DNA of 64,000 nucleotides, taken from NCBI GenBank assembly GCA_002269645.1, contig NIVC01001381.1, positions 85,220-149,219 of the forward strand, written 5' to 3'. A program made the translations under genes and the position numbers. The stretch is from Macrostomum lignano (lineage: Eukaryota). The notes beneath the pieces are model-generated. The model searched no databases. It worked only from the letters and a program-made list of their open reading frames with translations, and was not told the DNA's origin. This document shows, piece after piece, positions 23,001 through 29,000 of this stretch. The number at the start of each line of letters is the position of its first letter. The first letter of the stretch is position 1.

Positions 23001-26000
23001 GTCAGTCAATCAGTGTCAGTCAAACAGTGTCAGTCAATTAGTGTCAGTCAAACAGTGTCAGTCAAATAGTGTCAGTCAATTAGTGTCAGTCAATTAGTGT
23101 CAGTCAAATAGTGTCAGTCAATTAGTGTCAGTCAATTAGTGTCAGTCAATTAGTGTCAGTCAAACACTGTTCGTCAGACTCCTTACGAATTGGCGCAGCG
23201 AAGGCAGCCGAAGGAGCTGAAGGCGGCGCCTCATCAAACAGCGAAGTGCCGAAATCTTCATCATCTTCCTCAGATTCATCTGCGCCTGCAAAAACAGGTA
23301 CTCGTAGAAGGAATCGGCAATGCTGCAATCCTATTAAATAAAATCAAATATATATTCTAAAAATTCTAACCAATAGCAATTTCACATTTGTCATCGCAAT
23401 CCAGTAATCTAGCATCTTCGCAGCACATATCCAGCTCTAAGAGTGCAGTTTAAGCAGAGGGTTTATGATTTATTGCAATTTAAATAATTCATAATTGCAG
23501 ATTAAAAAATACTAAAGTAGCATTGGCTGACCAGCATCCAGATCGAAATCATCGGAAGATTCAGAGGAGTCCTCGCTACCATCGCTGGGCCGTGCCACCG
23601 CAGCCCGGGGCGCATCTGCTGCAGCTGGAAATATGATAAAAATATATAAATGCTTAAAGAAATGACCTATATAGTGACCACACACTTGCGACCAGAGAAT
23701 GACCAGATTAGCGACTATGACCAATCTGATGACCAGATAAGCGACTATGACCAATCTGATGACCAGATTAGCGACTATGACCGATCTGATAACCAGATTA
23801 GCGACTATGACCAATCTCTAATGACCAGATTAGCGACAGAGACAGTGTCTGCCGTCTCCAATCCTGTTGTGTCTGCTGTCCAATCCTTTTGTGTCTGTCT
23901 CTAATCCCGTTGTGTCTGCTGTCCAATCCTGTTATGTCTGCTATCTAATCAGTTTGTGTTTGCTGTTTCCAATCCTGTTGTGTCTGCTGTCTCCAATCCT
24001 GTTATGTATGCCGTCTCCAATCCTGTTGTGTCTGCTGTCTCCAATCCTGTTGTGTCTGCTGTCTCCAATGCTGTTGTGTCTGCTGTCTCCAATCATGTTG
24101 TGTCTGCTGTCCAATCCTTTTGTGTCTGTCTCTAATCCTGTTGTGTCTGCTGTCTCCAATCCTGTTATGTATGCCGTCTCCCATCCTGTTGTGTCTGCTG
24201 TCTCCAATCCTGTTGTGTCTGTCTCTAATCCCGTTGTGTCTGCTGTCCAATCCTGTTATGTCTGCTATCTAATCAGTTTGTGTCTGCTGTGTCCAATCCT
24301 GTTGTGTCTGCTGTGTCCAATCCTGTTGTGTCTGCTGTCTCTAATACCGTTGTGTCTGCTGTCTCCAATCCTGTTGTGTCTGCTGTCTCTAATACCGTTG
24401 TGTCTGCTGTGTCCAATCCTGTTGTGTCTGCTGTCTCCAATCCTGTTGTGTCTGCTGTCTCTAATACCGTTGTGTCTGCTGTGTCCAATCCTGTTGTGTC
24501 TGCTGTATTGGCGTACAACAGCAAAAGAAATTTCTATTTCAAATTTTCATAGCCTTAATCCCGATTTTCAGCTTGTAAAAAAGTACGTTAATAAAAAATT
24601 AGCGCATTGCATCAGACTTCTTACGAGCTGGTGCCTGGTAGGCTGGTGACAGCGGCTCCTCAAACAGCGACCTGCCGTATTCATCAAAGTTATCTTCCTC
24701 AAATTCAGCTTTGTCTGCAAAAAACGGAATCAGAACGCAATGCTGCAAATCGTATCGAATGAACAAAATTATAAACAAATTCAATAATTTTCTAATCAAT
24801 TCAAAGACGGATTTTACGTTGAAGTTTTCGCATTGACATTGCCTCGCAGGATTCCATGGATTCGGGCTCAAGGCAGAGGAATCTCGGCTCTATGAGTGCA
24901 GTTGAAGTAGCGGGTTTATGATTTATTGCAATTCGAATGTCATAATTAGAGATTAAAAAACAAATACAAAAAGCATTGGCTGACCATCATCAACATTCGA
25001 CATCTTTTCAAGATCGGAAGCATCTGAATATTCAGAACGACTGCTCGGTTCTTCACTGCCTGCCGCCGCATCCCATGGCACATCTGGTGCAGAAGATACT
25101 ACGGCTGAAAAGTAAGTGTTCAAAATGTTGAAAGGCTTAAATGACCTACCTAATGACCAACCTAATGACCACATAAGCGATAATAACGAACTTAATGACC
25201 AGATAAGCGACAATGACCAACCTAATGACCAGATAAGCGAGAATGACCAACCTAATTACTAGATCAGCGACAATGACCAACCTAATAACCAGATAAGCGA
25301 CAATGACCAACCTAATGACCAGATAAGCGACAATGACCAACCTAATAACCAGATAAGCGAGAATGACCAACCTAATGACCAGATCAGCGACAATGACCAA
25401 CCTTATGACCAGATAGGCGACAATGACCAATCTAATGACCAGATAAGATAAGCGACAATGACCAACCTAATGACCAGATAAGCGACAATGACCCATATAT
25501 TAATCAGATAAGCGACAATGACCCATTTATTGATCAGATTAAAAACGATGACCGATTTACTAACCAGATAAGCGACGATGACTAATTTAATGACCAGATA
25601 TGAGCGAATGCCTCATCTAATGATTAACCGTCAGTGATGAATCTAATGACGCTATCGAAGCAGCACTATGACCAATCTAATCACTAGATATGAGAAAAAG
25701 ACAAATTAAAGGACTAATTTAACACAATGACCGCTTCGATGACTGAAAATTAGCAGCTCACCTCCCAGTTTGAGTCCGGCAGCTTCGCGGCCAACGTAGA
25801 CATCTTTCTGGCCCATGCCGACCATGACGCCCTGGTGACGAGGCCGGCCAACCACGGTAGGGAAGCTTGCCAAGAGGTTGGACCGGTTCGACATCACGGC
25901 AGCTTTGGTTAGAAGCGAGCCGGAGTCCAACACCAGAGCCGGTTCGTCATTCCAGGAGTCTTCGTCCCGGTCATTGTCATCGTCAGATGATTCAGCAGTA

Positions 26001-29000
26001 GCTGCTGCCAGGAGAGGCATATCTGCAGATAATATTGTAAGCTCTTGCCGGTTATATTTGACATTTGACTCGCTTGACCGAGGAAGGAGACAGCAGACAC
26101 AACAGGATTGGAGACAGCAGACACAACAAGATTGGAGACAGCAGACACAACGGGATTGGAGACATCAGACACAACAGGATTGGAGACGGCAGACACAATA
26201 GGATTGGAGACAGCAGACACAACGGGATTGGAGACAGCAGACACAACAGGATTGGAGACGGCAGACACAAAAACAATAGGACTGGAGACAGCAGAGACAA
26301 CAGGATTGGAGACAGCATAGACAACAGGATTGGAGAGAGCAGACACAACCTGATTAGAGACAGCAGACACAACATTGGAGACGGCAGACACAATAGGAAC
26401 AGGTAGCAGAATTAAGCTCAAAGGTTTCCTTCAACTTTTTCTCACGTTTCATTTTTCGCCGTTTCATTTTTTTAGCAGCCTTGATTGGTTTGGCAGCTGT
26501 TTCGGCCTCTGGTGAAGGGCCACGTCCGCCGCGTAGACGCAGCACCAGGTGAACAGTGCAGCCTGGCGTCAGCCCTGCACTAGCCACAGTCCAATCTGAT
26601 TCCAACTGCTTTCCGTCAGCAACTAAACGAATCTGATCCACTGGGATGCACTGCCGTTCGTTTATTGCCTTCTTGAGCTCAAGAATACTTTGATTAGGCG
26701 TAAGGCTAACTGTGAACTCTTCGCTAGTGAGCGTTCTCACTTTGACAGTGAATTTAGATGGAAGAGCTGCGGAATGAACAGGTTATTCCTGTTCAATTTT
26801 TTGTCTGAATAAAAAATCTAACAAGCAATAACATCGAAAAAAAATCTCAGACTCACATTTAGCATCAGCTTGCCGCATTTGTGCGGCTTTCCGATTCTGT
26901 TTAACAGACAGCACCACCGGGTGCTTGTCGTGAACGCCGGCCAAAAGCAGCGAAGCTTCCAGATCGTCAAACAGCCGAAGAGCTTCTTCGCTCTTTCCGG
27001 TGTTTGACAACTCCTGACCATCAATGATACCGTCGGCAATTTGCGCGAGAATTTCCGCCTAAAAAAATTTAGACGAGTCATTACGAGAGTAACTATCCAT
27101 ATTGAGTTCTATTTAAATGCCGCGTTATTATAAAGTTTACTTTACGAGAAGGAAAAATGCCTCGTCAACTCCTTCCTTATAGAGGTAAAAAATTGGGACA
27201 AATGCCTCGTCATCTAACAAACTCACAAGCCCGTCGCCAGCCTCCTTGATCGGTTCCCAGCCCTGTGTGGCTAAGATATCAACCTTCTCGTCGTCTAGCA
27301 AAATTTGCAATCGGCCAGTCATGTCCGATTCAAATTTTTCGTCCTGTCAGAAATAGATAGCATTTACAATTAGTATATAACAATACCGGTCAGACAAACC
27401 TTAGAGATTTAGTATATTGTGAAAGTGTGCTACTATATCATAAGGATAACGATTTCATCTACCTTTTCACGATCCTCAACCGCTACGAAGCTGGTAAATT
27501 GGCAAGCCACTGAGTAGCGAATCGATAATTGAACCAGGTTGGCCTTCTGCTCCAGTCGCTTCAGCTGTAAATTTGATTGGGTTTGCTAATTTGTCACCTT
27601 TGAACTCTCAAATGAGTATACCTATTTTTATAGCTCTCTACCAATACCAGTTTATTGTGAACCTAATACGAGAATAACTTCAGTGGTGAACGCATCTGAC
27701 TTTCGCACCAAAGACCCCAGGTTCGATTATGTGCGCGACCGCACATCACGCCAACAACACAAGAGCCAACCACGGGGGTCAGAACTGCTTGGCTCTTTAA
27801 ATGACTGCATGTCGCCATGAGTTGCGACAGTTTCTCAAGTCAGAACTTCATTTATATTAAATCATCTTTTCTTAGAAACTCTCCGATTTAACTCTACCGA
27901 CTTTTCCGACTTTTTAGTTACCTGATGCAGAGCCGGATCGGTATCCAAGCTGCCAGCCTCCCAGTCGGCAATGAGGCTCCTAGCAGCCAGGGCGTGCACC
28001 ATGGAGCCGGTGGTAAAGCATAGCTCGCTAGTGAACACCGTGCAGCTGACTCGACAGTCGCCAGCTTTGGCATGCAGTGTCGCTCGTTGACATCCGCGAC
28101 CTTCGCGCGGCATCAAGCCATAGACAATCAAGCGCTGACCGTTGAACAGAGCCGACGGACAAGCAGGCGCTTGGCGCACTACAGACAACTCCTGACTGTC
28201 ACTGTTGTCATCATCGTCGTCAAGATGCCACTCAACGCTGAGCTCGGTAAGCGCCGGCGCGGTGAGCCGAGCAATCAGCTCGTCGGCCAATGCAGACCAT
28301 TTTGAACGTCTGGCCGGGTCGAAAAATTCCACGGAACCGCCGGAACCGGCAGCTCCGGCCAGCGATCGGAGCCGGTGCCGGTCTGGCGAGGGTCCAACCG
28401 AGCAGGCCAGCAAACGCAGGTGCTTGTTAGCACCTGAAGCGGCGACAGCCAGTGTAGCCTCTTTCGCTTCGTAGTGTCCGTCAGAAATCAGCAGCACCGC
28501 GTGCGGTCCGAATTCGCGCAGTTGAGCCAGGTAAGCCAGGTAATTAGAAAGATTTGTGCCACCCATATTGGGTTTTGAGGCTCGGATGAATTCTAGACAG
28601 CGATTCTGGACGCTTTTCCTGGAAAATTTATAACTCGTGAAGTCAGCAAATGGAATTTTTGCAGTTTAAAAGACACCAAGAACGAAAATTTAAATGCACC
28701 TTTTTAATAGATGCAGTGAACACTATATTAACGAAAAATGGTCCTTTTAGAAAAAATGCTATATGCTATTTAAAAATGGTACGCTTGAATGTTAAACTCG
28801 GAGTTTACAACATTTGACCGCCGACCCAATAGCCCAGACCCTAATCTGAATTGTCGGCAGTCAGGATTGTCTTTTTACCACATATTTAAAGAAATCTAGT
28901 TACTTTATAGCGCAAATTTAAAATGAATTTTATCAGATATCAAGAGTCTTTACTGTTTACTCTTTATGTACTCTTTAACGTATTGTACTTCCTGCTTTCA

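Follow-up and report, generated by a model that had tools for sequence, protein, structure and literature searches.

Why would a gene other than an actin gene keep 17 residues of actin unchanged while the residues around them drift? The question is raised by a 64,000-nucleotide stretch of the genome of the flatworm Macrostomum lignano (contig NIVC01001381.1, positions 85,220 to 149,219; hereafter the window, to which all coordinates refer), in which a first-pass annotation had pointed to an exon that encodes a short fragment of actin with the DNase I-binding loop (D-loop) intact. Here we report that this exon is part of the gene for vault PARP (PARP4). We regard it as very nearly certain that the exon sits in the PARP4 linker as one piece of a mosaic of symmetric exons, that the insert goes back at least to the cnidarian–bilaterian ancestor, and that purifying selection holds residues 35–55 of the actin sequence in place. 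The first-pass annotation had missed the PARP4 context, the mosaic make-up of the linker and the cataloguing, in 2014, of this kind of architecture.

An actin D-loop in a PARP4 exon

The exon spans 26022-25762 on the minus strand, as does every PARP4 feature of the window described below (261 nt, phase 1-1; defined by its open reading frame (ORF), by spliced mapping of gene models and by tblastn). It corresponds to a minus-strand ORF (26020-25706), in which 87 residues are followed by gtgagc. The 17 codons for actin residues 35–51 (25852-25802) encode a peptide identical to actin, as had been claimed and as a sequence ruler confirmed; this covers D-loop residues 36–51, and an exact match of that length is far beyond chance. 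The constrained core runs past these codons to the motif YVG (about 25855-25790).

Outside the core the likeness falls off sharply. Human beta-actin, used as a tblastn query against the whole window, matched over residues 3–58 (E = 7e-15, 60% identity) and found no other actin-like segment in the 64 kb, including the 25 kb downstream of the exon. The window copy agrees with actin at 20 of the 21 core residues (35–55) and at 10 of the 27 flank residues (8–34), the most eroded flank among the modules compared, so the annotation was right to call the flanks diverged. Pfam Actin (PF00022) matched neither the exon ORF nor gene model P0020, even at E ≤ 5; the window copy is therefore identified by BLAST and context only. 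The signature of actin phosphate-binding loop 1, DNGSGMCKAG, is not matched by the window sequence, and other PARP4 modules read DMGSLFMKAG, DTGLDTVKAG or DVGSHMWKVG at that position. The acidic stretch described before the fragment is present (18 residues) and recurs ahead of the Nematostella and oyster modules.

The fragment does not make up the complete fold of about 375 residues and four subdomains that characterizes the actin/HSP70-type ATPases. AlphaFold2 returned no confident fold for the exon product (predicted local distance difference test score (pLDDT) 55; predicted template modelling score (pTM) 0.22), which is consistent with the earlier view that the piece is too short to fold as actin. 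The model has three short strands where the first strands of actin sit, and its D-loop is unstructured.

An ATG start, an acidic N terminus and a good donor site would also suit exon 1 of an actin gene, whether ordinary or divergent, that has its remaining exons elsewhere. PARP4 exons lie on both sides of it, on the same strand and in frame, and make this identity extremely improbable; we rejected it as no further actin-like sequence exists in the window.

Reading frame and exon inclusion

The exon limits proposed from the sequence proved to be true splice sites, with an acceptor that reads ctgcag before AT ATG and a donor that reads GGAG before gtgagc. Two M. lignano gene models in UniProt, P0019 and P0020, contain the actin fragment with exactly these splice sites. 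P0020 maps exactly onto the locus; P0019 uses the acceptor at 26022, and P0020 an alternative acceptor at 26004, which gives a 243-nt version of the exon, with phase 1 at both acceptors. In the exon directly upstream in these models (27058-26857, 202 nt) the phase passes from 0 at the start to 1 at the end, which sets the phase 1 series that follows. The donor at 25762 is joined to the exon at 25104-24985, and the actin exon (261 or 243 nt) is followed by phase 1-1 exons of 120, 72, 90, 93 and 66 nt, every one of these lengths being divisible by three. The actin exon is present in four M. lignano gene models in all; residues of the flank vary among them, the loop does not, and frame and splice sites are intact. 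For the model P0212 no transcript-like contig is on record, and its sequence is that of a frameshifted partial model.

Between the upstream linker exon and the actin exon lies an intact ubiquitin-like exon (26766-26446; 321 nt, phase 1-1; Pfam ubiquitin E = 4e-17 on the ORF 26740-26354). It is collinear with a ubiquitin exon of a distantly related contig (L003, below), and yet all M. lignano models seen skip it, joining …QADAK straight to the actin exon. The sequence that it encodes closes with LRLRGG and a Lys-rich tail, Arg being the residue after GG, and the exon is probably a cassette exon that the annotated models lack.

Such skipping, together with the fact that the models stop short at the 3′ end, might be taken to mean that an actin pseudogene remnant within a PARP4 intron was wrongly included by the gene predictors; inclusion rests, after all, on gene models rather than on RNA reads. 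The open ORF, the canonical splice sites and the compatible phases argue against such an artefact, as do the homologous module in independent annotations of at least nine species and the purifying selection on the peptide that we describe below, and we consider it very improbable.

The actin module in other animals

A homology search with the exon alone returned only short, unnamed actin-like ORFs, three of which lie on contigs (L001, L002 and L003) that supplied DNA and synteny. L003, a 57-kb metagenomic contig from a distant relative, carries the end of a VIT domain, a vWA domain, two ubiquitins, an actin fragment and the domain that interacts with the vault protein MVP (MVP-interaction domain, MVP-ID), exon-by-exon collinear with the window, while its vWA domain is only about 40% identical to that of the window at the amino-acid level.

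The same arrangement extends well beyond flatworms. A Pfam Actin match, limited to profile positions of about 2–55, was found in the PARP4-like linkers of Amphiura filiformis, Pinctada imbricata, Saccostrea echinata, S. cucullata, Magallana gigas and Mytilus edulis. Two cnidarians, Nematostella vectensis (XP_032219397.2) and Hydra vulgaris (XP_065649889.1), joined this set through an exhaustive HMMER search, and each retains the module in every listed RefSeq isoform. The linker position of the module is identical in cnidarian, bivalve and brittle star PARP4, and in nine other species the actin module follows vWA in the same order as in the window. The Saccostrea module is likewise one exon, ending in phase 1 just past YVGKEVTG. 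Oyster PARP4 (P0036, K1PUC2) pairs the actin piece with a piece of the HSP70 substrate-binding domain, as the flatworm gene does. Spiralian modules have in common the derived flank states GSL[LF]MKAG and YVGxEAxG, which true actin lacks, and this favours an old, inherited insert over repeated recapture. The insert is at least as old as the cnidarian–bilaterian ancestor.

Purifying selection on residues 35–55

The annotation had proposed that the loop is retained selectively, and had suggested a comparison of synonymous with replacement divergence. We carried out this comparison among the four DNA copies of the module (window, L001, L002 and L003), using the Nei–Gojobori proportions of synonymous (pS) and replacement (pN) differences. 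Over the 22-codon core pS was 0.46–0.89 and pN 0–0.06, every change falling at one variable codon, whereas in the N-terminal flank pS was 0.55–0.89 and pN 0.2–0.59. Synonymous sites of the core are thus near saturation between module copies; the core is constrained and the flanks are not. The pattern repeats in 16 independent PARP4 modules, the identity of which to beta-actin is 52% over residues 8–34, 97% over residues 35–55 and 40% over residues 56–62. Purifying selection acts on residues 35–55 (the D-loop and its stem), and the rest has decayed.

A different account of the same contrast is that the fragment is a functionless relic serving as a flexible spacer, its loop kept actin-like by repeated conversion from highly expressed actin genes. 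The decay of the flanks, strongest in M. lignano, would suit a relic, as would the repeat-rich nature of the region with its local duplications, and the host actin genes stand outside our comparison. Against it, the same sharp boundary at residues 35–55 is found in 16 copies from cnidarians to bivalves, core synonymous sites are saturated between copies with replacements absent, the nucleotide flanks are too diverged for homologous pairing, and four M. lignano gene copies have kept an unbroken frame and intact splice sites. Moreover, with flank states inherited within Spiralia, conversion tracts would need to end at the same few codons in every lineage. We therefore judge a relic to be unlikely. 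Recent gene conversion from host actin genes likewise appears unlikely, because the inherited Spiralian flank states favour an old insert over recapture.

Organization of the M. lignano PARP4 gene

The exons of the window follow the order PARP, VIT, vWA, ubiquitin-like, actin and HSP70 substrate-binding domain on one strand. As in PARP4-like proteins, a clade-5 PARP here carries its actin-like segment on the C-terminal side of vWA. Two M. lignano models named 'Poly [ADP-ribose] polymerase' head the homologues of a composite query (89–92% identity); among the 120 matches listed, the other name-bearing sources are PARP4, PARP4-like or poly(ADP-ribose) polymerase, and the remainder are hypothetical or unnamed.

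At the 5′ end, two short pieces without a Pfam match (38840-38703 and 37925-37725) are probable BRCT exons, found by tblastn with the BRCT-containing N termini of Saccostrea and Nematostella PARP4 (E = 2e-4 and 4e-7). The catalytic PARP domain is encoded by exons 33654-33364 and 32817-32212, located by Pfam PARP and model mapping (E = 2e-11 on the window ORF 32832-32182, E = 4e-23 on P0019). Motifs compatible with an H-Y-E triad (FHGS, GIYFA and EYIV) occur in P0019, as judged by eye rather than by formal alignment. There follow a VIT exon (31757-31311; Pfam VIT E = 1e-32 on the ORF 31772-31221, and model mapping), two vWA exons (29751-29356 and 28620-27874; tblastn with P0019 and P0020, Pfam VWA_3 and VWA on both models, and collinearity with L003) and two post-vWA exons conserved with L003 (27564-27463 and 27343-27227).

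Downstream of the actin exon the exon map shows six linker mini-exons, all of phase 1-1 (25104-24985, 24889-24818, 24714-24625, 23624-23532, 23436-23371 and 23285-23149). The current gene models stop short at the 3′ end; past that point the same gene is predicted to contain an exon resembling the HSP70 substrate-binding domain, at 19121-18367 (phase 1 acceptor; ORF 19056-18253; Pfam HSP70 E = 9e-14, profile positions 379–483). The last piece is an open frame at 17114-16584 that probably encodes the MVP-ID, the C-terminal vault anchor. Nothing else in the window matches a profile of PARP4 C termini better, although the match is weak (E = 0.009) and Pfam gives none; the region aligns collinearly by tblastx with the MVP-ID ORF of L003. 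With the BRCT-like exons upstream and this weak MVP-ID match as its ends, the PARP4 gene covers more than 22 kb of the window.

The linker as a mosaic of conserved proteins

The linker consists of short symmetric exons and lies between the enzymatic and ITIH-like part of the protein (a probable BRCT domain and PARP, then VIT and vWA as the ITIH-like region) and the C-terminal region that anchors it to the vault. In eukaryotes at large it is pieced together from very conserved cellular proteins, copied whole or in part, which we detected with Pfam and with a BLAST panel of such proteins (the panel served for local detection only). Ubiquitin or SUMO-like domains occur in the PARP4 linkers of gastropods, a clam and many others. 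The 14-3-3 protein is present whole in amoebae, as its C-terminal half in amphioxus and as its last helix alone in L003 (4251-4544 of that contig, plus strand; Pfam profile positions 193–222, E = 5e-7). Linkers of various lineages contain the HSP70 substrate-binding domain, calmodulin, and the SNARE motifs of VAMP and SNAP25; that of Pelomyxa contains Ran. Heptads like those of the RNA polymerase II (Pol II) C-terminal domain (CTD) occur in Sycon, Dictyostelium and L003, and in the last of these a single exon of 903 codons (10864-13575, plus strand) combines the tail of the ribosomal P-stalk with CTD-like YSPTSPS heptads and segments resembling FG repeats. Copies of histone H3 or H4 N-terminal tails are found in some linkers (P0024 of Batillaria, residues 1558–1574; P0023 of Littorina, after residue 1316; P0197; P0181). 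The H3-like tail of Littorina reads GRTNQTARMST, with Asn and Met at the positions of H3 Lys4 and Lys9.

The ribosomal P-stalk tail …DDMGFGLFD is unmistakable in the linkers of Aplysia, Dictyostelium and several teleost fish. Mini-exons of the window (24714-24625, 23285-23149 and about 21400-21250) repeat an acidic run followed by FG..LF[DE]. Pfam found no match in these mini-exons, and their likeness to the P-stalk tail is tentative, a matter of motif resemblance.

In the linkers of molluscs and of L003, the LRLRGG of the ubiquitin is followed by Pro. GG–Pro junctions are poorly cleaved by deubiquitinases, so the in-line ubiquitin of these proteins may be stably displayed, as the Pro suggests. 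In-frame differences between isoforms map to the linker; one lungfish isoform, for example, lacks the stretch that holds the VAMP piece.

Two intronic minisatellites, one with a 24-nt unit (GTGTCTGCTGTCTCCAATCCTGTT) and one with a 30-nt unit, flank the actin exon of the window on both sides (23699-24506 and 25152-26398). The same two minisatellites recur around the next exon group, and downstream exon triplets are duplicated as well, which points to local segmental duplication inside the linker.

Earlier descriptions of the linker

Appended actin has been a known feature of this family since 2014, when Perina et al. (DNA Repair 23:4; PMC4245714) described PARP4-like (clade 5) proteins to which 14-3-3, 'e.g. 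actin' and ubiquitin-related domains are appended. For 14-3-3 on such proteins they listed amoebae, Capsaspora, sea urchin and amphioxus; they placed 'e.g. actin' at the C terminus, included Salpingoeca among the organisms, and saw in the actin and actin-binding domains a connection with the cytoskeleton. The flatworm protein is of the same family and has the same plan, a probable BRCT domain, PARP, VIT and vWA and then an actin-like segment. Their account gives domain lists only and names no flatworms, molluscs or cnidarians for actin; our analysis goes beyond it in restricting the actin part to residues of about 2–60/72, in confining constraint to the D-loop and in the breadth of the mosaic.

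In mammals, Daugherty et al. (PLoS Genet 2014; PMC4038475) found the exon-30 region of PARP4 to be disordered and under recurrent positive selection, and proposed a host–pathogen interface. The flatworm module occupies the same position, between vWA and the probable MVP-binding domain. Unlike the mammalian region, which evolves fast and for which that paper reports no recognizable homology to other proteins, it can be recognized as a copy of actin, and its core is invariant. Modules also persist in some vertebrates, namely the P-stalk tail in teleosts and VAMP in lungfish. A structural survey of 2023 described the region only as disordered, possibly with short linear motifs (PMC10450202). In open-access papers and bioRxiv we found no report of D-loop-specific constraint or of the breadth of the mosaic, and none of minimal-epitope modules, of a decoy reading or of a functional treatment of the inserts.

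Candidate functions of the displayed loop

What could a constrained D-loop do in an ADP-ribosyltransferase? The first-pass annotation had suggested a bait or actin-binding mimic, which is a plausible guess. Going by its sequence, the loop is apparently a displayed mimic. The exon would present, from PARP4, a flexible and exact copy of the actin D-loop, and factors that recognize, cut or modify the D-loop of actin would then engage PARP4 as well. Tentatively, and by analogy with other systems, we favour a role as bait or decoy towards factors of pathogens or toxins, a role to which we give somewhat less than an even chance. Factors would be captured beside an ADP-ribosyltransferase, or else a cut in the linker would release the enzyme from its vault anchor, given that the linker lies between the two and that cutting or binding it could therefore change where the enzyme is located. 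Neighbouring linker modules would be parallel baits.

Such a role is in keeping with the tiles themselves, which are exposed, invariant parts of their parent proteins, in sets that differ between lineages, and with the conflict-like selection under which the mammalian counterpart of the linker evolves. MICAL acts at M44 and M47 of actin, and ACD at K50. Actin is also a host protein targeted by pathogens, and the loop is the site of a bacterial protease: cleavage at Gly42–Val43, which the first-pass annotation had brought up, is documented for protealysin, inside the loop that binds DNase I (PMC11172720). Taken alone this is a weak argument, as most hub proteins are targeted by some pathogen.

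Read more widely, the whole linker from vWA to the MVP-ID would be an ancient array of integrated baits, in place from Amoebozoa to animals. Each module would reduce a hub protein of the host to its smallest invariant epitope or domain (the actin D-loop, H3/H4 tails, ubiquitin, the P-stalk tail, SNARE motifs, the Pol II CTD, 14-3-3, calmodulin, the HSP70 substrate-binding domain and Ran), and vault-associated PARP4 would serve as a broad-spectrum trap or tripwire for the toxins, effectors and viral proteins that attack those hubs. We put this wider proposal forward as a speculative one, with a minor share of our confidence.

Several points weigh against a bait. For this module the role is drawn from analogy. 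To our knowledge PARP4 is no established immune sensor, and it resides inside the vault lumen, which may limit access. The modules are kept from amoebae to animals, which fits a stable housekeeping role as well as an arms race. Support for the MVP-ID of the window is weak, the evidence for exon inclusion comes from annotation instead of RNA reads, and the sequence case against gene conversion from host actin genes is an indirect one. Finally, some protist PARP4-like proteins are reported to carry actin-binding domains, not actin pieces (PMC4245714), and these suggest an endogenous link to the actin cytoskeleton.

That link is the basis of another explanation, endogenous docking, in which the displayed loop binds partners of the cell itself and PARP4 is a multivalent hub. 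The likely partner would be the hydrophobic cleft on the barbed face of actin that receives the D-loop in filamentous actin (F-actin), or else host readers of the D-loop; docking would tether PARP4 or vaults to actin or bring substrates to the ADP-ribosyltransferase, and the other modules would recruit their normal partners. The invariant residues 35–55 coincide with the region that makes inter-subunit contacts in F-actin. Modules are stable over very long times, and several of them are binders rather than targets (14-3-3, calmodulin, the HSP70 substrate-binding domain and Ran). Actin or actin-binding domains are also reported on the PARP4-like proteins of Salpingoeca, Capsaspora and Acanthamoeba, for which the cytoskeletal link was proposed (PMC4245714). 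However, weak binding is what one would expect of an isolated, flexible D-loop, there is no evident reason for a single enzyme to require sites from so many unrelated hubs with lineage-specific turnover of modules, and positive selection in the mammalian linker suits conflict better than housekeeping. Docking is, in our estimate, a serious alternative, somewhat less probable than a bait.

The bait reading has counterparts in design. In the integrated decoys of plant nucleotide-binding leucine-rich repeat receptors (NLRs), and in the protease 'tripwire' linkers of animal NLRP1 and CARD8, a piece or mimic of a target, embedded in another host protein, intercepts or reports an attack. The PARP4 linker resembles them in its embedded target piece and its modular, lineage-variable make-up, a resemblance in design only; unlike them, PARP4 has no known status as an immune receptor, and no known effector or downstream signalling. 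A likeness of composition is offered by the chlorarachniophyte ubiquitin–actin and ubiquitin–P1 fusion genes that Archibald, Teh and Keeling reportedly described in 2003, which likewise would bring sequences of ubiquitin, actin and a ribosomal P-protein into one reading frame. Those fusions reportedly comprise full-length proteins freed by ubiquitin processing, whereas in PARP4 a large enzyme holds an actin piece of only 55 residues and the GG–Pro ubiquitin of molluscs and L003 should resist processing.

Neighbouring genes in the window

Directly downstream of PARP4, on the same strand, lies a gene for a STAND/NACHT-like nucleoside triphosphatase (NTPase) (1353-3075, minus strand; weak Pfam matches to nSTAND1, NACHT and AAA_16), for which NCBIfam returned nothing useful. 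TEP1, the third of the vault proteins, is a STAND NTPase. In an MFS-type transporter gene the 5′ exon is tandemly duplicated at 12681-13466 and 14531-15586, with 10961-11851 (all minus strand; Pfam MFS_1), and each copy of the exon runs into a TEDTPY-type repeat in the coding frame. Putative remnants of a long terminal repeat (LTR) retrotransposon polyprotein were recognized by eye at 6000-8200 (minus strand), where Pfam gave no match. On the plus strand, a uracil/thymine-DNA-glycosylase-superfamily exon (48585-49100; Pfam UDG E = 3e-13) and a potassium-channel tetramerization exon (60778-61440; BTB_2 E = 6e-31) belong to ordinary neighbour genes.

Implications for PARP4 and vaults

A region known as vaguely 'disordered' and 'fast-evolving' becomes a set of concrete peptide displays, in which each module names its candidate partners: of the hub proteins represented in it, the PARP4 linker repeatedly preserves just those parts that are most invariant and most exposed. 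For annotation, the small 'fragments' of actin, ubiquitin, 14-3-3, HSP70 and proteins of that sort inside PARP4 loci are explained and should not be called pseudogenes. We know of no agreed function for vaults or for vault PARP since vaults were described in the 1980s. If docking is true, the modules show which cellular systems vault PARP is wired to. If the D-loop is a bait, it would be an animal and amoebozoan counterpart of the integrated decoys of plants, attached to an ADP-ribosyltransferase, and if the linker as a whole is an array of baits, vaults would gain a defined function.

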